Assembly: GCA_002104945.1 (NCBI GenBank)
Contig: MCFH01000209.1
Coordinates: forward strand, 1-16,721
Source: Piromyces finnis finn
Lineage: Eukaryota > Fungi > Neocallimastigomycota
Direction: 5' to 3'
DNA length: 16,721 nt
The translations under genes were made by a program, and so were the position numbers. Under the pieces are notes generated by a model. The model did not search any database. It saw only the letters and a program-made list of their open reading frames with translations, and was not told where the DNA came from. This document shows, one piece after another, positions 1,012 to 16,721 of this stretch. The first letter of the stretch is position 1. The number at the start of each line of letters is the position of its first letter.

Positions 1012-1016
1012 ATATT
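1012..1016 (+). repeat. Target-site duplication, left copy (ATATT)
   Basis: Directly precedes the TGTTAG start of the 5' LTR and is identical to 6209-6213. Confidence 0.9.
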
Positions 1017-1290
1017 TGTTAGAAATATTAAAAAACAAAGAAATATTTCTTTTTGAATATATATAATGAATTTAAATTAAATTAAGATCGTTGTTAAAAT
1101 ATATTAAAGTATATTTTTACATCTCATTGTATTATTTTGACATGTATTATTAACAAGCCACAATTAGTATAATTATGATTGTAATTTTCCATTTTTGTAA
1201 TACTTTGTAATTACCAAAATATAAAATATATTTTATTATTAAATAAAGTTTATTATTAAAAACATATTATAAAACGTTTTGTAATTAATA
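1017..1290 (+). repeat. 5' LTR of copia family 1 (274 bp, TGTTAG...TTAATA)
   Basis: Direct repeat of 5935-6208. Compared base by base by eye, the only mismatch found is T1173 vs A6091. Confidence 0.97.
1155..1175 (+). promoter_or_regulatory. LTR promoter motif AAGCCAC-N6-TATA box, variant TATAATTA
   Basis: The same motif and spacing occur in the 3' LTR (6073-6093, TATAAATA) and in the family 2 LTR (14785-14805, TATAAATA). Promoter function is inferred. Confidence 0.6.
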
Positions 1291-1310
1291 GATTAAGAGT
1301 CTCAGACTGA
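1291..1310 (+). promoter_or_regulatory. Primer-binding site complementary to an internal (5' half) region of tRNA-Lys(CUU)
   Basis: GATTAAGAGTCTCA abuts the LTR end. Its reverse complement TGAGACTCTTAATC is the anticodon arm with anticodon CTT in the eukaryotic tRNA-Lys(CUU) sequence as I recall it. The next bases GACTGA complement the D-arm TCAGTC. Confidence 0.85.
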
Positions 1311-1321
1311 CAAAAAACAAA

Positions 1322-4300
1322 ATGAATGCTGCTAATTATTTTTACTCAGATGAACGTCTTGACAAATCCAATTTTGACTGCTGGTATCCAACTGTTGAAT
1401 CTGTTTTAAAATCAAAAGGACTTCTAAAATACATTGAAAATGACATCATTTCAGACGCTCAAAATAAAGTCAAAGCTGGAGCTATGCGAAGCGAGGAATT
1501 AGAAAAACTGGAAGAGGAAGATTCTAAAGTTAAAGTATTTCTCTTGATGAGTACTACCTTAGAAGTAAAAGGGAAAATCAGAAAAGAAAGAACATCTTAT
1601 GAAATTATAACAAAAATCAAAGAATTATATGACCCCAAGAGAAAAAAAGATGTCACTCAATATCTTCGTGAGTTAAATACATTAAATGCAAAAAGTCTGG
1701 ATGTAAGTCTTGATATAATTGACAAGATAATTGAAATCTTTAATATACTCGACGAAAAGAATTATAAGTTGGGTAATTTGGAAAAAACGAAGTATATATA
1801 TGCCGCATTGCCTATTGAAGTTCAATCAAGATTAACCCTTGACCCAGATATTGAACCAAATAAGTTTATTGAAGAAGCCAAGAAAATCGTTAATGTTTTA
1901 CAATATTATTTAGGAAAAACATCAAAAAATGAAAATAAACCTAAGAATATCGATGATTTAATGGATATTGATTATGTAACCAAATTTAGACCAACTAAGC
2001 CACTCGATAATAAAATTAAAAGAGAAGAAAATTATTGCTATATATGTGAAATGAAAGGACATAGTACTAATAAATGTGGATTTAATATAAAAGTACGTGA
2101 AGAAAGAAGAAGAAACAGATCTAAAAATAAAAAACATTATAATAAATGGAACAAAAAAGGAAAACACATTGGAAATGTTGAAAGAACCAATAATCACTTA
2201 CATGAAGATATTGATAATGATAATATTTGCTTTGATGAACTCCAACCATTATTTGAAAAACATGTTGATCATATTGAGGTATGTTCAATAAAAGAAAAAT
2301 ACATTGATAAAACAAACAAGACTTCAACTAGCCAAACAGAAAATAATAAATTTTACAAAAATATAAATAGCATAGATAATGCTTGCAACAATGAAGTATT
2401 GTGGACATATGACACAGGATGTTCAGAACACATAACAAATAACAAAAATATTTTACAAAATTTTCGCCTTGAAAATATACATATGAAATGTGCCAACAAT
2501 ACTACATGTGAATTCAAAGGTATTGGTACATTTATTGGTAAAATAAACAACGAAACAATCCGTTTAGATAATGTATACTATTCAGACAAAATTAACAAAA
2601 ACCTAATTAGTGGTATCAAACTAACACAAACAGGATATCCATGTGAAATCGATTATATAAATAATAAAACAACATTAATTCTTAAGAAATATAACAATAA
2701 CAAAAAATGTAAACAAGAAATTGGAAGATATATAGCTGACCCTTCCAACATCATTAAGATACCAATAAACGTTTTAAAATCTTCAATTTCTAATGTATCT
2801 ACTAATAAAAATGAACTAGACGAATACAGTAATCGTCTTTGGCATAAACGCCTTGGACATTTCTACCAAGACAATCTTACAAATTACTTAAGCCTTCACA
2901 ATATTAAAAAACCAGATTGTCTACAATGTAAAATTTCAAAACTTAAAAGATTACCTCACAAAGGTAAAACACCTGTTGCATCAAGAATCCTTGAAACAAT
3001 ACACTCCGATGTGATGGGACCAATGAATCTTATTTCTAGTACAGGTAAAAGATTCATTTTAACTTTTATTGATGAATTTTCTAGAAAATCATGGGTATAT
3101 TTACTAAATAATAAAAAGGAAGTTGCTAAAAATGTTATAGAATTTATAAAATATATTACAAACAAATATGATCTCAAAGTTAAGTACTTTAAGACTGACA
3201 ATGGAAAGGAATACATGAACAAAAAGATTATTAATTTCTGCTCAAGAAATGGTATTAGTAAGGTTTACTCGCCACCATATACTCCTGAAATTAATGGAAA
3301 AGCAGAAAGGTTTAACCAAACGTTAGTCAATTGTGCTAAAACTCTTTTAGCTTCTAGTAGATTAGACACAAGATTCTGGGATTATGCTATCAACTATGGA
3401 AATTTCTTATATAATATTAACCCTCATAAAGGTATTGGAAATTCTATCCCTAATGAAGTATTTTTTAACAAGAAAGTTGACCTAAAATATGTAAAAACAT
3501 TTGGATGTATAGCATACTATAAGGATTATTCACAAAACAAAGGAAAATTTGATAACAACTGTAAAGAAGGTGTTTTTTTAGGACTTAGTTTTAAACATGA
3601 CTGTTACATTATAATGGATTATCAAGATTATAAATTACACCTTGTCCGTGAAGCCGTATTTGAAGAAGATAAACCATCCAATTTCAATTTATCGAAAGGA
3701 AACCTAGATGATAATTTTAAACTACCCTCAGATGATAGATTTTCAAATGACACTGATGAAAAAATACAAAATGCAAACAATAATCATATTAATTTTACAG
3801 ATATCAATTTTCAAAATACTTATGAAAATTTAGATAATAATGATATTATATCAACTCATAAAAATGACAATAATACTAATGATGAGATAAATGATAGTAC
3901 ACACTCTTTCGATGAAGACTCAGAAATTATTAGTATAACAACTGATAATAATATACAAGATAATAGCAATAATACAACTATTAATGAAGTTGCTATTGAA
4001 AACAATAATAGAATCAACAATACAAACACTTGTTCCAAACAAAGTTATACAATGGAAGATGTCATAGAACTTTTAGATAATTTCAAAATTTCACCAGAAA
4101 ATGATTATTCTTTTAATCCAAAAAATGCTAATATAGATAAAACAAAATTAAAAAGAAGACACAGTTTTAATGATATATCTTACAACAAAAAGAAGAAAAT
4201 ATATCAAGAATATTTTAATTCAATAGTAAAAAGAAAATTAAATGACAACGACTATAAAATAAGTAATAAGAAATATAAAATTAATGAAATAATTAACAAT

Positions 4301-5920
4301 TTACCTGTTAAAAGACCTGGATGTAAAATAGATAATAATAATGTTAAACGTGCTACAAACATTAATTATGATAGGGAAATTGCAAATATAAACATGGATT
4401 CTCCACTAACATTTAATGATGCTATAACAAGCAAATATAAAAATAAATGGATAGAAGCAATTAAAAATGAATTAAAAAATTTATACGATAACAATATTAT
4501 GAATTTAGTTTCAAAATTACCTGAAAATAAAAATCCAATTAAAACAAAATGGGTTTTCACAATAAAACGTGACAGTAATAATGATATTGTAAAATTCAAA
4601 GCAAGATTAGTAGCAAAAGGATATAGTCAAATAAGAGGAATTGACTATGAATTAACATTTTCTCCTACTCTTAGCATCGATAGTATTAAACTTATTATTT
4701 CATTATCAGCAAAATTTCATTGGAAAATATTTCAACTTGATATTAAAGCTGCTTACCTTAATGCAAAATTAGATAAGGACATATATGTTACAATCCCACA
4801 AGGAGACAAAAATTATGGAAGAGGATACTGGAAATTAAACAAAGCTTTATATGGCTTAAAACAGTCTGGACGTCAATGGAACGAAACAATTACTTTATTT
4901 CTTAAAAATAATGGTTTCAAACAACTGATTTCTGAACAATGCATTTTCAAAAGAGAACGAAATGGTATTACAACATGCATTATAGGTATATATGTTGATG
5001 ATATGATCATCACTGGGAAAACGTTTGAAATTGAAAAAACTATTAAACTGATAAAAAACAATTTTAAAATATCAAATTGTGAAAAAATAAATTATTTACT
5101 TGGAATAAAAATAGAAAATAATGGTTTTAAATATTCAATATCACAAACAAATTATATTGAAAACATTTTATCTAAATATAATATTAAAAATACTCGTAAA
5201 GCAAAAACACCATGCACAGGAGATAATATAAACGAAAATAAAACACCATTCGAAAAAACCACATACAAAAGTGTTTTAGGTTCTTTGATTTATTTATCAA
5301 AATGTAGCCGCCCAGATATTGCCTATGCAGTAAATAAAGCAGCCAGAAATGCGGAAAATCCAACAATATCTGATTGGTATAAGGTAATGAATATCTTAAA
5401 ATATTTAAATTATACTAAAAATTATAAAATCGAATATTCAGGAACAGGGGAAATTTTAGCTTATTCAGACTCAGACTTAGGAGGTGACCCAAAAGATAAA
5501 AAATCAACATCAGGTCACATAATTTTGATGGGAAATGATCCAATATGTTGGTCCTCAAGAAAACAATCTACAGTAGCTACTTCATCAATGGAGGCTGAAT
5601 ATATAAGCACAACGGAATGCTCAAAAAAGGTATTATGGATAAGAAGCATATTACAAGAACTATTCAATTTTAAAAAACCAATAAAAATCTTTACAGACAA
5701 TTTATCAAGTAAAACTTCTATTGAAAATGGACAATTAAACTCAAAATTAAAACATATAAATATAAAATTTTATTTCAATCAAGACCACATTAAAAATAAA
5801 AGAATAATTTTAGAATACATCAATACAGAAGACATGTTGGCTGATGTTCTAACTAAAAATGTTAATGGACCAAAAATGAAGAAATTCTCAAACATAATTT
5901 TCAAACATGCAGAAAATTAA
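1322..5920 (+). CDS. gag-pol: Ty1/copia Gag-Pol polyprotein, 1532 aa, uninterrupted
   Basis: Copia Gag N-terminus (SNFDCW...LKSKGLLKYI); CCHC knuckle CYICEMKGHSTNKC (2036-2077); protease WTYDTGCSEH (D codon 2411); integrase HHCC (WHKRLGHF...CLQC) and DDE core (IHSDVMGP, KTDNGKEY, NGKAERFNQTL); RT (KARLVAKGYSQ, QLDIKAAYLN, LYGLKQSGRQW, YVDD at 4991-5002); RNase H (YSDSD, MEAEY, FTDN, KHINIK, MLADVLTK). Confidence 0.98.
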   Translation: MNAANYFYSDERLDKSNFDCWYPTVESVLKSKGLLKYIENDIISDAQNKVKAGAMRSEELEKLEEEDSKVKVFLLMSTTLEVKGKIRKERTSYEIITKIKELYDPKRKKDVTQYLRELNTLNAKSLDVSLDIIDKIIEIFNILDEKNYKLGNLEKTKYIYAALPIEVQSRLTLDPDIEPNKFIEEAKKIVNVLQYYLGKTSKNENKPKNIDDLMDIDYVTKFRPTKPLDNKIKREENYCYICEMKGHSTNKCGFNIKVREERRRNRSKNKKHYNKWNKKGKHIGNVERTNNHLHEDIDNDNICFDELQPLFEKHVDHIEVCSIKEKYIDKTNKTSTSQTENNKFYKNINSIDNACNNEVLWTYDTGCSEHITNNKNILQNFRLENIHMKCANNTTCEFKGIGTFIGKINNETIRLDNVYYSDKINKNLISGIKLTQTGYPCEIDYINNKTTLILKKYNNNKKCKQEIGRYIADPSNIIKIPINVLKSSISNVSTNKNELDEYSNRLWHKRLGHFYQDNLTNYLSLHNIKKPDCLQCKISKLKRLPHKGKTPVASRILETIHSDVMGPMNLISSTGKRFILTFIDEFSRKSWVYLLNNKKEVAKNVIEFIKYITNKYDLKVKYFKTDNGKEYMNKKIINFCSRNGISKVYSPPYTPEINGKAERFNQTLVNCAKTLLASSRLDTRFWDYAINYGNFLYNINPHKGIGNSIPNEVFFNKKVDLKYVKTFGCIAYYKDYSQNKGKFDNNCKEGVFLGLSFKHDCYIIMDYQDYKLHLVREAVFEEDKPSNFNLSKGNLDDNFKLPSDDRFSNDTDEKIQNANNNHINFTDINFQNTYENLDNNDIISTHKNDNNTNDEINDSTHSFDEDSEIISITTDNNIQDNSNNTTINEVAIENNNRINNTNTCSKQSYTMEDVIELLDNFKISPENDYSFNPKNANIDKTKLKRRHSFNDISYNKKKKIYQEYFNSIVKRKLNDNDYKISNKKYKINEIINNLPVKRPGCKIDNNNVKRATNINYDREIANINMDSPLTFNDAITSKYKNKWIEAIKNELKNLYDNNIMNLVSKLPENKNPIKTKWVFTIKRDSNNDIVKFKARLVAKGYSQIRGIDYELTFSPTLSIDSIKLIISLSAKFHWKIFQLDIKAAYLNAKLDKDIYVTIPQGDKNYGRGYWKLNKALYGLKQSGRQWNETITLFLKNNGFKQLISEQCIFKRERNGITTCIIGIYVDDMIITGKTFEIEKTIKLIKNNFKISNCEKINYLLGIKIENNGFKYSISQTNYIENILSKYNIKNTRKAKTPCTGDNINENKTPFEKTTYKSVLGSLIYLSKCSRPDIAYAVNKAARNAENPTISDWYKVMNILKYLNYTKNYKIEYSGTGEILAYSDSDLGGDPKDKKSTSGHIILMGNDPICWSSRKQSTVATSSMEAEYISTTECSKKVLWIRSILQELFNFKKPIKIFTDNLSSKTSIENGQLNSKLKHINIKFYFNQDHIKNKRIILEYINTEDMLADVLTKNVNGPKMKKFSNIIFKHAEN

Positions 5921-5924
5921 GTTT

Positions 5925-5934
5925 GACAGGGGAA
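5925..5934 (+). promoter_or_regulatory. Polypurine tract of copia family 1
   Basis: GACAGGGGAA lies immediately 5' of the 3' LTR TGTTAG, just after the ORF stop. Confidence 0.85.
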
Positions 5935-6208
5935 TGTTAGAAATATTAAAAAACAAAGAAATATTTCTTTTTGAATATATATAATGAATTTAAATTAAAT
6001 TAAGATCGTTGTTAAAATATATTAAAGTATATTTTTACATCTCATTGTATTATTTTGACATGTATTATTAACAAGCCACAATTAGTATAAATATGATTGT
6101 AATTTTCCATTTTTGTAATACTTTGTAATTACCAAAATATAAAATATATTTTATTATTAAATAAAGTTTATTATTAAAAACATATTATAAAACGTTTTGT
6201 AATTAATA
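5935..6208 (+). repeat. 3' LTR of copia family 1 (274 bp)
   Basis: Matches 1017-1290, is preceded by the PPT and is followed by the TSD ATATT. Confidence 0.97.
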
Positions 6209-6213
6209 ATATT
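6209..6213 (+). repeat. Target-site duplication, right copy (ATATT)
   Basis: Identical to 1012-1016. It fixes the LTR 3' end at ...AATA (6208). Confidence 0.9.
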
Positions 6214-6845: not shown

Positions 6846-8000
6846 ATGAATAAATTTAAAATAAAAAACAATTTAATTACTTATAACGATTTAATTTATA
6901 TTCCAGAAAAATTAAGATTAGAATTCTTAACTAAGTACCATGAAAATCCAGCTGCAGGACATTTAGGTGTAAAAAGAACATTAGAATTAATTACAAGAAA
7001 TTTCTGGTGGCCTAAAGTTGAAAAGGATGTTACAAATTTTGTTAAATCATGCGAAGTTTGTGCCAGGAATAAAATAAATAGACATAGAAAATATGGATTA
7101 TTACAACCACTTGAAGTTCCAGATAAACCCTGGGAATCTATCGAAATTGACTTCCTATGCGGTCTGCCTGAATCTAAAGGTTACACGATAATAATGGTGG
7201 TTGTAGACAGGTTCTCAAAAATGATACATTTAATACCTTTTAAACAAATACCTGATGCCAAAGAAACAGCCAAAGCATTCATGGAAAACATATTTAAATT
7301 ACACGGCTTGCCGAAGAATATTTATTCTGATCGCGGTACTCAATTCACAAGCGCATTATGGCAAGAATTAATGGAAATGCTTAATATTAAATCTATTTTA
7401 GCCACAACTGACCATCATGAAACAGTCGGTCAGGTTGAAAGATGCAATGCTTTCATTACTCAATACTTGAGGTGTTATTCAAAAGCCTACTACCACAATG
7501 ATTGGGTAGACTGGTTATATTTAGCAGAATTTTCTTATAATAATGCAATTAATGAATCAACAAAAGAATCACCATTTTTCATAAATTATGGTTTTCACCC
7601 AGCAATGGATGATAATTTTCTTCTTTCTGATGCAGATACCAATTTAAAAATAGCTAGAAATATTAGTGATAATTTCAATCATATTAAAGATGTTTTAACC
7701 AGATCAATTGAATTATATAAACGTGCTGCCGATAAGAAAAGAATGGTTGCACCTATTTTCAAAGTAGGTGATCTTGTATGGATACAAGCTCCTCCATCCT
7801 TTAATACTGAAGAAAGAACAAAACTTGCTCCATGTAAATATGGACCTTACAAAATTCAAGAAGTTTTGAAATTTAACAATTATAAAATAAATATAAAAAA
7901 TTCACCATTCCCAAAGTATCATTCAGTATTTCATATATCAGAACTAGAACCATTTATTCCAACTCCAAAAAATTTTATAAAAAGAAATTCACATCAATAA
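6846..8000 (+). CDS. Ty3/gypsy-type integrase, 384 aa (H2C2 zinc finger, DDE core, GPY/F module)
   Basis: HENPAAGHLG...WWPKV...CEVC; GLLQPLEVPDKPWESIEIDF; VVVDRFSKM; YSDRGTQFTS; GQVERCN; FKVGDLVWI...KLAPCKYGPYKI; HSVFHISELEPF. Confidence 0.93.
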   Translation: MNKFKIKNNLITYNDLIYIPEKLRLEFLTKYHENPAAGHLGVKRTLELITRNFWWPKVEKDVTNFVKSCEVCARNKINRHRKYGLLQPLEVPDKPWESIEIDFLCGLPESKGYTIIMVVVDRFSKMIHLIPFKQIPDAKETAKAFMENIFKLHGLPKNIYSDRGTQFTSALWQELMEMLNIKSILATTDHHETVGQVERCNAFITQYLRCYSKAYYHNDWVDWLYLAEFSYNNAINESTKESPFFINYGFHPAMDDNFLLSDADTNLKIARNISDNFNHIKDVLTRSIELYKRAADKKRMVAPIFKVGDLVWIQAPPSFNTEERTKLAPCKYGPYKIQEVLKFNNYKINIKNSPFPKYHSVFHISELEPFIPTPKNFIKRNSHQ

Positions 8001-8727: not shown

Positions 8728-9435
8728 TGTCAAGAATAGAAGACGATTAAAAAATAAATTAAATATTCAAATAAACAATTTAAAAATCAAATTTATATTT
8801 CAAAAATTATAAAACACTTTTAAAAATAATTAAAAGATCACTTGAAAAAATTTAATATTGAAAAGGGTTAAGGATCACAAAAATTTAATTTTCAATAAAT
8901 TAACCCTTGAGAAGAAAATGTTATTATACGAAACCTAGTGATAACTTCTGAATCTCGTGTCCTATTTTCCTTTTCTAGAGACTTCAAACCAATTTTATTA
9001 GAAAGTACTAGTTGAGATCTATATTCTCACAAATTATCAGCTAATTTAGACCACTAGTTCTTGAGATATAGCTATTTAAAGAATTAATTAGTTCCAATTA
9101 ATATATAATAATATATATTAAAATGATTAATATTAATTTATATAATTAAAGTCATTATTCAAGTCATCCAACTTTCTATAAATAATTTAATTTAAAAATT
9201 CTCCATTATTATTAAATAAGGTTAGATAATAAATATTCTTGATTACAAACCTAATCAATTATAAAAATTAATTAATAAATTTTCAAATAATTTTGATTAA
9301 TAACCTCAATCATAATCAAACCAAAAAGCCTTTGGATCAAAAATCATTAGTTATAATTATTAATTAATTAATCATGAGAATATATAATTAGTATCAGTAA
9401 TTGTTATTCTCAATTTATAATATTAAATATTTACA
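8728..9435 (+). repeat. 3' LTR of the Ty3-like element (~708 bp, TGTCAA...TTTACA)
   Basis: Follows the PPT, has TG...CA termini with a 5/6 terminal inverted match, and is homologous along its length to 10853-11502. The right end could lie a few bp further because both copies continue with ATTTAA. Confidence 0.85.
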
Positions 9436-10038
9436 ATTTAAAATGGTTAAAACAATACTTTTATTTTAAAAGTAATTTAAAAGATTAATCTTAAGATCTA
9501 TCATATGAATTCATATTATTAATATCAATATCAATTATTAATACTTTAATTATTTTATTTTTATTATCAATATTAATATCAATATTAATATCAATGTAAT
9601 TTTATTATATGTAAGAAAAAAATATTTAAACAAAGAATTGAAATCAATTTTGAAATTCTTTGTAAGATTATTAATTATTAATTATTAACTATAATATAAC
9701 TTAATAAATATTATCTTAATAAATAATTAATTAATAATAAAAAAATATAATAACTTATTAATTGTATACAAAGTAAAAATTAATATTTAAAATATCAGGT
9801 ATACAAAAAAATATTATAATTGAAATAATAAAAATATTCAATGAAATATCATATAAAAAGTATATTAAAACTTATTATTAAAACATCGATATTTTAAAAA
9901 AATATTATAAATATCATTTATTTAAAATTGAAATATATTTATATATATAAAAGATTATAAATCATAAATATATTATACAATGCTTTCATTAAATAATATT
10001 TCATTATTTTTACAATATATGAAATATTATATTAATGC

Positions 10039-10196
<158 letters not shown>

Positions 10197-10852
10197 GCTT
10201 TACATTATAATTTGTAAGAATTAATATTAAATTAATATTTATTCTTATATAATTAAACATTAAATAGAAATTTAATGAATTTATTTAGTATATATTTATT
10301 TATTCATTAATATAATATAGTAAGTTTATTTAGTACATTAATTATTCATACACTAATTACATTATAAAATGTTTATTTAAAATATATTTATTTATTTATT
10401 TAAATAATATAGCAAATTTATTCAATATATTAGTTTTACGTACATTTAGATTAATTAATAATATTTATTTAGAGATTTGTGATTCATTCATTCATTTATT
10501 GGTAAAATTATTATACAAAATTTTCATATATTAAAACATTTTATTTTATTTTGTTTAATATATTAGAAATATCGGATATTAAGGTTTTTTCTTTATTAAG
10601 TTTTACTTAATATTACGATAATTAATATGTATAAAATATCAATCAAATTTCTTTTTAGGTTTTTCCTCTAATCTTTTCCTAAAAAGATATTTGTTAAAAT
10701 TAGAAATTAATTATTAAATTTTAAATTTTGATAAAATTATAAATAAGAGGACTTTTGGAGTTCACTAAAGAATCCAAAGTTATTATTATAATCATTACAA
10801 TATATGTAAGAAATAATAACTATTTAATGTATAATTAATATTTCTTAGTTAA

Positions 10853-11502
10853 TATCAAGAATAGAAGACGATTAATAAATAAATTAAATATTTAAATAAT
10901 AATTTAAAAATCAATTTTATATCTCAAAAATTATAAAATATTTTAAAAATAATTAAGAGTACTTTGAAAAAATTTAATATTGAAAAGGGTTAAAGATTAC
11001 AAAAATTTATTTTTCAATTTTTCAATACATTAATTTTGAGTAAAGAATGCATTATACAAAACTAGCGATAGCTTTTGAATCTCACGTCCTATATCCGTTT
11101 TCTAGGGACAGTCAAATTGGTTTTATTGGAGAGCAAGGGTTGGGATCTATATCCTCACAAATTTTCAGCTATTTTAGATCACTAGTTTTAAAGATATTGT
11201 TAATATTAATTTATATAATTAAAGTCATTATTCAAGTCATCCAACTTTCTATAAATAATTTAATTTAAAAATTCTCCATTATTATTAAATAAGGTTAGAT
11301 AATAAATAATCTTGATTTCAAACCTAATAAAAACTAATAATTTTTCAAATAATTTTGATTAATAACCTCAATCATAATCAAACCAAATAACCTTTTGATA
11401 AAAAAACCTTAGATTAGTAATAATTATTAATTAATTAATCATGAGAATATATAATTAGTATCAACAATTAGTATTCTCAATTTATAATATTATGCATTTA
11501 CA
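10853..11502 (+). mobile_element. Diverged solo-LTR-like copy of the Ty3 LTR (~650 bp)
   Basis: Starts TATCAAGAATAGAAGACGATTAA (vs TGTCAAGAATAGAAGACGATTAA) and shares blocks such as AAAGTCATTATTCAAGTCATCCAACTTTCTATAAATAA. It has many substitutions and lacks about 55-60 bp in the middle. No PPT precedes it and no clean TSD is visible. Confidence 0.85.
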
Positions 11503-11855
11503 ATTTAATATAGTACAAAGAAAGGTAAAAAAAAAATTATTTTTCAAAAATATTTTTAAATAGTTATATCATAACATTTTGAGTATTAAAAGAAATAATA
11601 ATTGAAGTGAATTATTTACTTTATAAGAAGTAAAAATTATAATAGTTGTATATGAAGAAAAAAAAATATCTTTTTTACATTTATCTTTTTCTTATTTAAT
11701 AAATAATAACAAAATTATTTTTATATCAATAAAATTTATAATTTTAATTTCTTTCCTTATTGTTACTTTTGATATATAATATAATAATAATAATATAATA
11801 ATAATAATAATAATAAAAAGTGTATTATTTTATTTATGTATATTATTTATATTAT

Positions 11856-14288
11856 TTACTTAATTAAATGAATTTGATAAAATTCAAATAATTCATGAAA
11901 ATTTTTATCATTTTGTGGATATCTTTGTTTAGAAAGAATAACAAGATTTAAAATGAGAGGTATCAAGGTATTATCTTTTTCAAGGATGGGTATTATTTTC
12001 AAAGAAGGAGACAATAAAATTTCTCTTGGTAATTTGAACAATAAAGAATGATCTAAATAGACACATCTCAATCTTGGCATATGCCATAAACTGTTGGGAA
12101 GTGCATGTAAAAATTTATTTTTTCGCAAATCTAATAGTTGCAAGTATTGGAGTATGAAAATATTTGGAGGAATTTCTAGTAATTGATTCTCACTTAAATT
12201 CAAGCTTCGTAGTGATCTATAATTGATGATGTCAAGCGGGAGTAACGTTAAATTCTTATTTTTCAAGTTTAACCAAACAACATTATAAAGATAATTTCCT
12301 AATTTTTTTTCTTCCTCTTCATATTTAAAATGATAATACATACCAGTTGTCATATCTCCCTTATGAATATAATGTTGAATAGATAATAATTCATCAAGAG
12401 AAATATATCTTAATTTCATTAAATTTCCCATTTCTTTTGGAAGTTCAGTTAATTTTATATTCACTCGAAGTGATAGCCTTTTTAAATTGGTTAAATTTCC
12501 CATTTCTTTTGGTAATTTGGATAAAGCATTATTATGAAGGTAAATTTCATTTAGATTTATCATATTACCAATCTCTCTTGGCAATTCAATCAATTCGTTA
12601 TAGGTGATGTCAAGTTTTTTTAAATTTGTTAAATTACCAATTTCACTTGGTAATTTAGTTAACCCATTGTTATTTATTAGAAGTGTATTTAAATTTGTTA
12701 AATTACCAACGTCATTCGGTAATTCTGTTAATTGATTATAAGAAATGTCTAGCTCTTTTAAATTTATTAAACAACCTATTTCCTTAGGTAATTTTTTTAA
12801 ATGAATATAGCTCATATTTAAGATCGTTAATGAGGTCAATGATCTAATTTCCTTCGGAAGTTCGTTTATATAATTAATGAATAAGGTTAATTCTATTAAT
12901 TTACTTAGATTTCCTATTTCAGCTGGTAATTCTGATAGCCTATTTTGATAAAGGAACAATTTTTTTAAATGGATTAAGTTCCCTATTTCTAGGGGAAGTC
13001 TATTTAATTGATTATAATCACACATAAGCACTTTTAAATTTATCAAATTACCAATTTCATTTGGTAACTCTATCAGCCTATTGCTATTTAAATTTAATTC
13101 AACCAACTTTTTTAGTTGGCCTATTTCTTTTGGTATTTTCTCTATCACATTGAAATTAATATTTATTTTAGTTAAATTGATTAAATTTCCTAATTCTTTT
13201 GGTAATAAAGTTAATTTATTCATTTGTAAGTATAACTTTGTTAATTGAACTAAATTTCCTATTTCTTTCGGAATTTCTACTATTTCATTATTACTAACAT
13301 CTAAAGTTTTTAAATTTATTATTTGTCCTATTTCTTTTGGTAAGCTCTCTAAAAAATTACTTTCAAGACTCAACATAATGAGTTGATGTAAATTTCCAAT
13401 TTCTTTTGGTAATTTTGATATATGATTTTTTTCTAATATTAATTCAGTTAAATGAGTTAAATTACCTATTTCTTTTGGAAGTGTTAAAAGTTTGTTTTGT
13501 TTTATATTTAATTTAACTAATTGAACTAAATAACCAATTTCTTTTGGTAATTCTGTCAATTCATTTTTTAAAAGATAAAATTCAGTTAGATGAACTAAAT
13601 TACCTATTTCTTTTGGCAATTCAATTAAGTTATTATTGGCTAGATTTAGTATTTTTAAATTTATTAGACTTCCTATATCTTTTGGTAAATCATTTAAAAG
13701 ATTATTTTGAAGTTTTAATTCGATTAAATATTTTAAATTATTTATTTCTTTTGGCAATCCCTTTAGATAATTGTAACAAATACTTAATTTTTTTAAATTA
13801 GTCAATTTTCCTATTTCTACAGGCAAATTACTTAATCTATTCTTATTTAGGTTTAATTCTGTTAAACTAGTCAAATTTCCAATTTCTATTGGTAATTCCG
13901 ATATTTTATTCTTTTCAAGATTTAGTTTTGTTAAACGAATCAATTTACATAGTTCTTTTGGTAATTCATATAATTGGTTTTGACAAAGATTTAATTCTAC
14001 TAAATTAATTAAATTTCTTATTTCTTTTATTAATTCTGTTAATTGTATTTGTTTCATTTCTAGTACCTGTAATGATGTTGCTTTTCTTAATAATAGTGCA
14101 AGATTATTTTCTAAATTTGCATTTTTGGTTTGCTTATATATAATTGTTAATTCTTTTAAATTGGAAAAGGAGAGTTCTTCCACAGGAATATTTTTGAACT
14201 TTTTCCAGTTGGTAACAATTTTTTTTCTATCATATTTATTCAAATTTAGAATTAATTGGGATAGGTTTAAATTCTTTTCGCTTTCCAT
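11856..14288 (-). CDS. Leucine-rich-repeat-only protein, 810 aa, about 28 LRRs of the 23-residue LPKEIGNL type
   Basis: Uninterrupted ORF with about 23-24 consecutive repeats (consensus LPKEIGNLTNLKELNLxxNxLTE), a non-LRR insert (SIQHYIHKGDMTTGMYYHFKYEEEEKKLGNYL) and about 4 further repeats. I see no signal peptide or catalytic domain. Confidence 0.93.
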   Translation of the reverse strand: MESEKNLNLSQLILNLNKYDRKKIVTNWKKFKNIPVEELSFSNLKELTIIYKQTKNANLENNLALLLRKATSLQVLEMKQIQLTELIKEIRNLINLVELNLCQNQLYELPKELCKLIRLTKLNLEKNKISELPIEIGNLTSLTELNLNKNRLSNLPVEIGKLTNLKKLSICYNYLKGLPKEINNLKYLIELKLQNNLLNDLPKDIGSLINLKILNLANNNLIELPKEIGNLVHLTEFYLLKNELTELPKEIGYLVQLVKLNIKQNKLLTLPKEIGNLTHLTELILEKNHISKLPKEIGNLHQLIMLSLESNFLESLPKEIGQIINLKTLDVSNNEIVEIPKEIGNLVQLTKLYLQMNKLTLLPKELGNLINLTKININFNVIEKIPKEIGQLKKLVELNLNSNRLIELPNEIGNLINLKVLMCDYNQLNRLPLEIGNLIHLKKLFLYQNRLSELPAEIGNLSKLIELTLFINYINELPKEIRSLTSLTILNMSYIHLKKLPKEIGCLINLKELDISYNQLTELPNDVGNLTNLNTLLINNNGLTKLPSEIGNLTNLKKLDITYNELIELPREIGNMINLNEIYLHNNALSKLPKEMGNLTNLKRLSLRVNIKLTELPKEMGNLMKLRYISLDELLSIQHYIHKGDMTTGMYYHFKYEEEEKKLGNYLYNVVWLNLKNKNLTLLPLDIINYRSLRSLNLSENQLLEIPPNIFILQYLQLLDLRKNKFLHALPNSLWHMPRLRCVYLDHSLLFKLPREILLSPSLKIIPILEKDNTLIPLILNLVILSKQRYPQNDKNFHELFEFYQIHLIK

Positions 14289-14647: not shown

Positions 14648-14894
14648 TGTTAGAATACAAAGAATGAATTAAAGATTAAATAAGTGTCAACGAAATTAAA
14701 TATAATTGAAAGATATTTTAGATTATTTGAATGACTTAGTTGTTCTTTTAAACATTGTATTAAATTATTCATTGTTAAATACATAAGCCACTTTTAGTAT
14801 AAATAAGAGTAAATTTTCAAATATTTTGTAATATATAATCAATAATTACTTATTATTAATAAATATAAATAAACTTTATTTATAAAAACCAATA
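14648..14894 (+). repeat. 5' LTR of copia family 2 (~247 bp, TGTTAG...CCAATA)
   Basis: Same start hexamer, AATA end, AAGCCAC-N6-TATAAATA motif and abutting PBS as the family 1 LTR. Its partner LTR is outside the window, so the boundaries are set by analogy. Confidence 0.85.
14785..14805 (+). promoter_or_regulatory. LTR promoter motif AAGCCAC-N6-TATAAATA, family 2
   Basis: Conserved with family 1 in otherwise diverged LTRs. Confidence 0.6.
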
Positions 14895-14914
14895 GATTAA
14901 GAGTCTCAGCTCTA
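14895..14914 (+). promoter_or_regulatory. Primer-binding site complementary to the 5' half of tRNA-Lys(CUU)
   Basis: GATTAAGAGTCTCA followed by GCTCTA, the complement of tRNA positions 40-27 and 25-20 (TAGAGC), skipping position 26. Confidence 0.85.
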
Positions 14915-14928
14915 ATATTACCTGCGAC

Positions 14929-16721
14929 ATGTCTGCTGAAACCAAATTAAGAACCGAAGAAATTCTTAACAAGAACAACTTCGAGAACTGGAAATTCCTT
15001 ATCAATAACATCCTGAGAGCTACAAAATCATGAAGTACGCAAATGAAGATGTTATTGGAAATTTAAAGAAAAAATCTTGAACAAGAGAAGAAAAAATCAC
15101 CTTCTGAAAAAACACTCAAGACAATTAAGGACTTGGAAAAAGATATTGAAAAGGCGAAACTGAAGATGCATTAGCATGAACTATCATCAGTAACAATGTT
15201 AGTCAAGAGGCATTAAGTTACTTTAGATATCTTAAAACCGCTTACGATATTATGCAAAAATTGAAGGTCCTGTATAGAAAAAAGAAAATTGCTGATCCCA
15301 ACTACTGGTTGAAAAAATTATATTCTTTAAAAGCTAAGAATCTCACTGATTGCAAGGATATTATTAACCAGATCAATGAAATATTTTATGTGATGAACAG
15401 AAATAATATCCAACTTGGAACATGGGAAAAGATCAGAGTTTTATACTTGTCCTTTCCTAAAAATCTTAGAGAAAAAATCCATCCAAACGGAAATGAATCG
15501 GGTGAAGAAAAATCGGATGAATCAACTATATCATTAGTTATAGATTCACCAGATAATAAGACAATATGGACTTTTGATACTGGTGCTTCAGAGCACATTA
15601 CGAATAATAAAGATATATTAACCAATTTCGAAGAAGAAAAAGTCATTTTAAAATGTGCCAAACGGATCTACCTGTGAGTTTGATGGTTTTGGAACTTATG
15701 AAGGTAGCATCAATGGGTATGATATAAAATTAGAAAATGTACTTTACTCTAAAGACGTTAACAAAAACCTATTAAGTGGTATTAAACTTGTTAAAAATGG
15801 CATGGAATGCAGTTTAAAATCTAGAAAGGATAAAGTATTTCTCTCCTTAAAAGTAACAAAAAATAATAAAAGAACTGTTAACATAGGAACTTTCAAAGCA
15901 AATAAAAATAATATAATCAGAATCATATCTGAAAATAAAATAAAATCAGAAACATTTATTGATGCTATTTCCGATGAAGATTTTATAGATATCAATGATC
16001 AGTCAAAGTTGTTATGGCATAGATGACTTGGTCATTTTTTTCAAGAAAATTTAAACGAGTACTTAAGGTTACATAATGAAAAACCCATAAAATGTTTGGA
16101 GTGTAAAATTACTAAGCTAAATAGAAAAACACACAACAAGAAAACACCCAAAGCTAAATTCCCATTAGAAGTAATACATTCTGATGTGATAGGTCCTATA
16201 GTAAAATAATACACTGGAAAGACATATATTTTAACTTTTATTGATGAATTCTCAAGAAAAAGCTGAATATTTCTCTTAGAAAGAAAATCAGAAGTACCAA
16301 GAATAATCATAAATTTTTTAACTTATCTGAATAATCAATTTCATAACAATGTGAAAATATTCAGATCAGATCAAGGTACTGAATACAACAATAAGAAAGT
16401 ACTTAACTACTGCAAGAGCCATAGTATAGTAAAAACATTTTCACCACCCTCACAATCCACAAAACAACGGTGTTGCAGAACGTTTTAATTACACACTTGT
16501 AAGCTGTGAAAAAACGTTACTTAAATGGAGCAAAATGTCTACTGACTTCTGGGATTACGCTGTTAAGCATTCCAATATGTTATATATTATTACTCCACAC
16601 AAAGGCATACATAATAAAATTCCAAATGAAATATTTTATAGAAGAAAAGTTGAGTTAAAATATATAAAAGTATTTGGTTGCGTAGCACACTACAAAGATT
16701 TTGAGCAAAATATAATGAAAA
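14929..16721 (+). pseudogene. Disrupted copia Gag-Pol (Gag, protease, integrase part)
   Basis: ATG at 14929 (MSAETKLRTEEILNKNNFENWKFLINNIL), stop at 15031-15033; protease WTFDTGASEH; frameshift near 15660; WHR*LGHF (TGA 16024-16026); IHSDVIGP; KS*IF (TGA 16264-16266); RSDQGTEY; +1 frameshift near 16450 in SPPHNPQNNGVAERF; KVFGC. Confidence 0.92.

Follow-up and report, generated by a model that had tools for sequence, protein, structure and literature searches.

A tRNA-Lys(CUU) fragment as the probable primer of copia-type retrotransposons in the anaerobic fungus Piromyces finnis

Two copia-type retrotransposons in a 16,721-nt stretch of Piromyces finnis DNA (the whole stretch that we analyzed, referred to as the window) raise the question of which molecule primes their reverse transcription: Directly after the LTR, where a TGG would mark a primer binding site (PBS) for a tRNA 3' end, neither element has this triplet, and the sequence starts with GATTAAG in both. 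A previous interpretation of the letters alone (the sequence-only reading) had noticed this absence together with an identical 14-mer that follows both LTRs without a spacer, and had proposed a cleaved or unfolded tRNA-Lys(CUU) as primer. We therefore examined the two elements, the tRNA-Lys(CUU) of the host, and the distribution of the 14-mer within and beyond this genome.

Two copia-type elements in the window

A complete LTR retrotransposon, element 1, occupies 1017-6208 on the forward strand; its parts and the flanking duplications are:

1012-1016 (+): left target-site duplication ATATT; the same 5-mer stands at 6209-6213
1017-1290 (+): 5' LTR, 274 nt, TGTTAG...TTAATA; direct repeat with 5935-6208
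1291-1304 (+): candidate PBS, GATTAAGAGTCTCA; complements positions 27-40 of the host tRNA-Lys(CUU) without a mismatch and adjoins the LTR
1305-1310 (+): GACTGA, proposed as the 'D-arm box' of family 1 and unsupported; the host D-loop has TCAATC, not TCAGTC
1322-5920 (+): intact gag-pol ORF, 1532 aa, with Pol_BBD protease, integrase, and RVT_2 reverse transcriptase
5926-5934 (+): purine-rich stretch ACAGGGGAA, a putative polypurine tract by its position directly 5' of the 3' LTR
5935-6208 (+): 3' LTR; direct repeat with 1017-1290
6209-6213 (+): right target-site duplication ATATT; the same 5-mer stands at 1012-1016

The two LTRs of 274 nt each differ by a single mismatch at 1173, and the end of the 5' LTR was placed at 1290 because the 5-bp duplication ATATT is found on both sides of the element. 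The Pfam domains of the polyprotein follow one another in the order Pol_BBD (residues 361-439), rve (560-655), SH3_retrovirus (715-785), and RVT_2 (1058-1298). Element 1 thus shows the Ty1/copia (Pseudoviridae) arrangement, in which the integrase lies upstream of an RVT_2 reverse transcriptase within one gag-pol, as well as the corresponding LTRs and 5-bp duplication. Judged by its intact ORF, its near-identical LTRs, and its target duplication, it looks recently active.

Several observations concern the presence of element 1 in public data. In contigs from the source DNA run and from a horse metagenome, the flanks ending at 1011 and starting at 6209 are joined without the element, with 6 letters in common at the joint; this suggests either an empty site or a repeated flank, and the very high word depth of the flanks makes a repeat possible. 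Part of element 1 itself is also present in a horse metagenome. Short, near-identical pieces of its internal region were found among the assembled contigs of one public run that we guess to be RNA, which lends weak support to transcription.

Element 2 starts close to the right end of the window and comprises:

14648-14894 (+): 5' LTR, 247 nt, starting with TGTTAGAA and ending with CCAATA; its 3' partner lies beyond the window
14895-14908 (+): candidate PBS, the same 14-mer, directly after the LTR
14909-14914 (+): GCTCTA, complement of tRNA-Lys(CUU) positions 20-25 (3' strand of the D-stem); the base opposite G26 is missing
14929-16721 (+): degraded gag-protease-integrase in ORF pieces, with a Pol_BBD match and tblastn matches to element 1 in three frames

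Its coding region is interrupted by stops and frame changes and runs past the end of the window. Both elements share the LTR start TGTTAGAA, the LTRs as a whole align only partially (about 71% over 113 nt), and the encoded proteins are 48-59% identical in the protease-integrase part and 32% identical in gag. By these sequence comparisons they are two diverged Ty1/copia families, as had been proposed.

The remainder of the window holds further repetitive and coding sequence. Just downstream of element 1, a 384-aa ORF (6846-8000, +) with Integrase_H2C2, rve, and Tf2-type SH3 domains constitutes a stand-alone Ty3/gypsy integrase remnant, and upstream of element 1 a dense array of GTTCCACAA- and GTTTCACAA-like motifs with a period of 14-15 nt covers 361-720. 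A segment of about 700 nt is present twice (8730-9455 and 10855-11522; 76-92% identity, 2.06-2.13 kb apart), with a long (ATA)n run at 10044-10200 between the copies, and on the reverse strand 11856-14288 encodes an 810-aa leucine-rich-repeat protein in which a 69-nt (23-aa) unit is repeated about 22 times.

Within the window the 14-mer occurs exactly twice, at 1291-1304 and 14895-14908, both times on the forward strand and immediately after LTR ends at 1290 and 14894. None of 200 shuffled windows contained two matches to it, even with two mismatches allowed. Two established modes of priming, which the sequence-only reading had itself listed as competing possibilities, were ruled out for both elements: tRNA 3'-end priming by the lack of a TGG site after either LTR, and Tf1-type self-priming by the finding that the longest complement of the 14-mer in the element's own LTR measures 5 nt.

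The host tRNA-Lys(CUU) and the proposed priming route

The genus Hemivirus is defined by half-tRNA priming, and hemivirus cDNA synthesis starts within the anticodon stem, where nucleotide 40 of the tRNA provides the 3'-OH (PMC1181622). A pattern search of the genome yielded one real tRNA-Lys(CUU) gene:

G000:C227:117727-117800, equal to L036:1486-1558 (-): tRNA-Lys(CUU) gene; ARAGORN anticodon CTT, Rfam 66.4 bits

The gene is followed by a T run, and its product has C25, a G at position 26, and the D-loop AATCGG. Positions 27-40 read TGAGACTCTTAATC, which is the exact complement of the 14-mer. The sequence-only reading had assigned the 14-mer to precisely this register as a half-tRNA site and had named a host tRNA-Lys(CUU) devoid of the matching sequence as the outcome that would overturn the assignment; the host gene bears the assignment out. 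The geometry is that of a hemivirus: The 14-mer complements the anticodon stem-loop, the 3' end of the primer falls on nucleotide 40, and the site adjoins the LTR. The tRNA species is Lys(CUU) rather than the initiator tRNA-Met, a trait that is usual for this group, not defining.

The gene lies at the very end of its contig, and a single copy was found, compared with dozens of identical copies for other tRNAs; about 165 candidate primer sites would depend on it. A BLAST search of the gene against the genome returned itself as the sole match. In the general tRNA family search 63 of 2914 candidates were scored, and the match between PBS and tRNA rests on the gene found by pattern.

On the basis of these sequence relationships we consider it highly probable that a 5' fragment of the host tRNA-Lys(CUU), cut after nucleotide 40, serves both elements as the primer of minus-strand DNA synthesis. 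The proposed route would begin when the anticodon stem is cleaved in its 3' strand and this 5' fragment is released. The fragment would anneal to the 14-mer, and reverse transcriptase would extend its 3'-OH into the LTR. In the exact match to 27-40, C40 is the partner of the site's first base, which places the priming 3'-OH at nucleotide 40; since an uncut tRNA has no 3'-OH there, we take the primer to be a 5' fragment produced by cleavage. Of the two forms suggested previously, the cleaved tRNA is hence retained and the unfolded one is dropped. Later in the cycle, plus-strand strong-stop synthesis would copy the primer from nucleotide 40 back to 27 and would normally stop at G26 if this base is m2,2G, which is unable to pair with C. 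Every cycle would in this way renew the 14 nt from the tRNA and leave the flanks to drift.

A variant of this scheme is that the primer is not a fragment cut at 40, but a ready-made host tRNA half or another tRNA-Lys isodecoder missing from the assembly. The position of the single gene at a contig end speaks for this variant insofar as further copies may be unassembled, and so does an 'AT' that often follows the 14-mer and that the found gene, with C25 and G26, does not explain. Stress-induced tRNA halves, however, are normally cut in the anticodon loop and not in the stem after nucleotide 40; moreover, every site starts with the complement of C40, and the found gene already matches all 14 nt. 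We regard this variant as improbable and retain the fragment cut after nucleotide 40.

The 14-mer across the genome and its D-arm extensions

The genome assembly (56.46 Mb in 232 contigs) is very AT-rich. Counting both strands, it contains the 14-mer 166 times, compared with no occurrence of the reversed control, and variants at the anticodon wobble base are restricted to four sites. The letters preceding the 14-mer are ...CA in 97 copies and ...TA or ...AA in 67; one copy is the tRNA-Lys(CUU) gene, the only one among all genomic copies that continues as a tRNA. The genome contains no classical iMet half-site AGGTTATGRGCCC adjoining an LTR-type A.

For a census of families we read 60 distinct sites of the about 165, located roughly on contigs C1-C152. 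All 60 are junctions between an LTR-like end and the 14-mer, with no tRNA gene among them. Clustering sorts them into 15 families, and between families the sequence on either side of the 14-mer is unrelated. A copia-type gag or protease lies just downstream in at least 10 of the 15 families (nine by Pfam scan plus the family of element 1), and the five families without an ORF near the site may be non-autonomous. An invariant stretch of 14 nt between drifting flanks would be explained by repeated recopying from the tRNA.

Further features were noticed at individual sites. In copies of the families F2 and F4 (for example L006:1501-1560 and L019:1501-1540) the site is followed by repeats of GACTC or GTCTCAAG that are able to pair with its 3' half; the terminal GAGTC of the site, for instance, finds a complementary GACTC a few bases further along. 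In F2, no ORF is present in the vicinity of the site. Two F4 copies have a tRNA gene no more than about 450 nt away, namely Arg-TCT (L012:1003-1076) and Ser-TGA (L017:1955-2036), and may reflect tRNA-directed insertion. At another locus (L024; G000:C35:22198 and 22595) two F4-type primer sites stand on opposite strands about 400 nt apart.

The ability of the GACTC or GTCTCA repeats in F2 and F4 to pair with the site could mean that RNA structure matters, and the 14-mer might then be a different cis signal, serving packaging, dimerization, or end recognition by the integrase, with another primer and a merely coincidental resemblance to the tRNA. We judge this to be very improbable, since a match of 14 out of 14 nt at the exact hemivirus register is expected by chance with a frequency of roughly 1e-7, given about 45 tRNA species. 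Furthermore, the elements lack a TGG site as well as a self-complement in the LTR, and relatives just outside the clade carry an iMet half-site at the same place (see below). A primer function of the 14-mer is thus the reading that we pursue.

The sequence-only reading had gone one step further and had interpreted the six letters after each 14-mer as family-specific boxes, both complementary to the D-arm of the same tRNA. Both hexamers are present (GACTGA at 1305-1310 and GCTCTA at 14909-14914), and GCTCTA of family 2 indeed complements tRNA-Lys(CUU) positions 20-25 while skipping G26. GACTGA of family 1, in contrast, pairs at 5 of 6 positions with the D-loop of the host, which reads AATCGG where the vertebrate tRNA has AGTCGG, and the longest exact match of the family 1 extension to the complement of tRNA positions 1-26 is 3 nt, which corresponds to chance level. 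Within the window, the argument from two different boxes that match one tRNA consequently fails.

Across families the picture is more favorable. D-arm runs of at least 5 nt that lie within 2 nt of the register occur in 4 of 15 families versus about 0.5 expected (P about 0.001; 0-2 in the reversed and sense controls), and exact in-register D-arm complements occur in 3 of 20 cases, comprising the 15 families and five outside loci (P about 0.0009), whereby both P values are rough, as thresholds were set after inspection of the data and the families are related by ancestry. The in-register runs include CTCTA in F3 (positions 20-24) and CTACCGA in F5 (16-22), the F1 extension reads GCTCT, and in L106, an outside locus, the extension matches at 13 of 20 positions including GATTGAG (11-17) and forms a near-continuous complement of positions 10-24. 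Most families, the intact element 1 included, show no extension beyond chance. On this sequence evidence we take the D-arm complementarity to be real, optional, confined to a minority of families, and mostly in register.

The boundary between the site and its extensions is sharp: Conservation of the 14-mer ends exactly at tRNA position 27, and the base opposite G26 is never a C (12 A, 5 G, and 3 T among the 15 families and five outside loci). In eukaryotic cytosolic tRNAs with an encoded G26, this base is m2,2G in 127 of 160 cases (PMC10275265), and the prediction for G26 of the host tRNA-Lys(CUU) is that it is very probably m2,2G as well. Because conservation ends at 27, no C stands opposite G26, and m2,2G is usual at this position, we infer that the strong-stop product would end at G26.

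The extensions beyond this boundary could have been left by synthesis that now and then ran past G26, or they could lengthen the primer duplex in an auxiliary role and be under selection. The latter possibility becomes a rival proposal in its strict form, in which 14-mer and family-specific D-arm box together make up a bipartite functional PBS, both parts being needed for primer selection or initiation in the manner of the Ty1 boxes. The hexamer of family 2, the extensions of F1, F3, F5, and L106, and their excess over expectation both near and exactly in register are compatible with such a function. A required box should, however, be present in element 1, which is intact and recent-looking and yet stands at chance level like most families; the GACTGA of family 1 mismatches the host D-loop, and in-register matches fit passive copying of the primer equally well as selection. 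A bipartite PBS in this strict form appears unlikely to us for these reasons. Of the conserved extra boxes that characterize a Ty1-like bipartite PBS, element 1 shows none, element 2 a 6-nt match, and a minority of families matches above chance. Somewhat better placed, though still tentative and on balance doubtful, is the idea that the in-register D-arm complements, the skipped G26 in element 2, and the A opposite G26 in most families are footprints that reverse transcriptase left when it passed the modified G26 during plus-strand strong-stop synthesis. If this footprint reading were true, these genomes would keep a natural record of the strong-stop end and of the way in which the enzyme handles m2,2G, and the whole copia clade of anaerobic fungi would stem from one primer switch from iMet to Lys(CUU). 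The abrupt loss of conservation at G26 and the in-register D-arm remnants lead to testable predictions on the plus-strand strong-stop end on a half-tRNA primer.

Relatives and known half-tRNA primers

A search with the reverse transcriptase region returned many full-length polyproteins: The closest, among them an Orpinomyces protein, are 57-74% identical and mostly come from short contigs of about 5 kb, and a further group is 40-45% identical. The same 14-mer was found either where the LTR ends or immediately ahead of gag in four of the relatives (L099, L101, L103, and L106; 40-64% RT identity, GC 24-27%), and after an adjacent LTR in L100. Three more distant loci with 38-39% RT identity, on contigs of higher GC, carry a different sequence directly after the LTR, namely GGTTATGGGCCCA in L104 and L107 and AGTTATGAGCCCA in L108; this is the classical iMet half-tRNA site of the copia/Ty5 type. 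L102 and L105 have no recognizable LTR-PBS junction. In L106 and L100 it is the LTR behind the gene that the Lys site adjoins, and the start of the contig repeats its end, which suggests either tandem elements with a common LTR or an assembly that wraps round.

In a maximum-likelihood tree of the reverse transcriptases, all verified Lys-site rows fall into one clade of 16 rows (support 100/99) and are spread over both of its deep branches, whereas the three iMet-site rows lie outside; the tree is unrooted and was calculated without an outgroup and without named reference elements such as copia, Ty5, or Tca2. Within the limits of three outside relatives and an unrooted tree, the Lys clade most likely descended from copia elements that were primed by an iMet half-tRNA and subsequently switched the tRNA.

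Such switches have precedents: Among the copia lineages of fungi and plants, half-tRNA priming has moved to another tRNA species on several occasions (PMC10886601, PMC6317226). Published half-tRNA primers comprise iMet, Arg, Ile, Tyr, and Asp; the iMet half-tRNA is used by copia, Ty5, 1731, Osser, and several plant lineages, not by Tca2 or Bianca. No report of Lys half-tRNA priming was found in the literature searched, which excludes most subscription journals and Repbase, and a literal search of it for the core of the 14-mer, spelled as DNA and as RNA, brought up no paper on retrotransposons. Half-tRNA priming as such is known; to judge by the sequence match, Lys(CUU) would add a tRNA species to it, which is incremental and overturns nothing. 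The elongator tRNA-Lys(CUU) would thereby join a short list of half-molecule primers, and one primer would be common to a whole deep copia clade of anaerobic gut fungi, apparently including non-autonomous dependants. In practical terms, PBS finders that seek tRNA 3' ends would miss about 165 elements in this genome, for which the 14-mer is a simple marker.

How do the Piromyces elements compare with known systems? Like copia, Ty5, 1731, and Osser, they have a site directly after the 5' LTR that complements the anticodon stem-loop, with the 3'-OH at nucleotide 40 and no TGG, and they share with hemivirus-type elements the order gag-protease-integrase-RT and the 5-bp target duplication; this likeness is one of features, not of sequences, and unlike those four, which use the initiator tRNA-Met, they match an elongator tRNA. 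In yeast Ty1, tRNA-iMet primes with its 3' end, and conserved boxes are complementary to its T and D arms. Like Ty1, the Piromyces elements have, downstream of the core site, additional sequence that complements the primer tRNA; in contrast to Ty1, however, only a minority of families carries such extensions, which mostly keep to the register and are missing from the intact element 1. Also comparable are copia elements from an ascomycete yeast, in which the primer site is complementary to the interior of a tRNA other than the initiator (PMC4139406) and which differ in tRNA species and host. The Copia families of Puccinia and the Helenus TRIMs use an anticodon loop, that of tRNA-Tyr, Ile, Asp, or iMet, plant Bianca uses a half tRNA-Ile, and non-autonomous elements use the site of their autonomous partners (PMC10886601, PMC6317226). 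The Piromyces elements depart from Puccinia, Helenus, and Bianca: Lys(CUU) lies outside the primers reported there, the genome yielded no classical iMet half-site, and one primer would here serve about 15 families and both deep branches of an RT clade.
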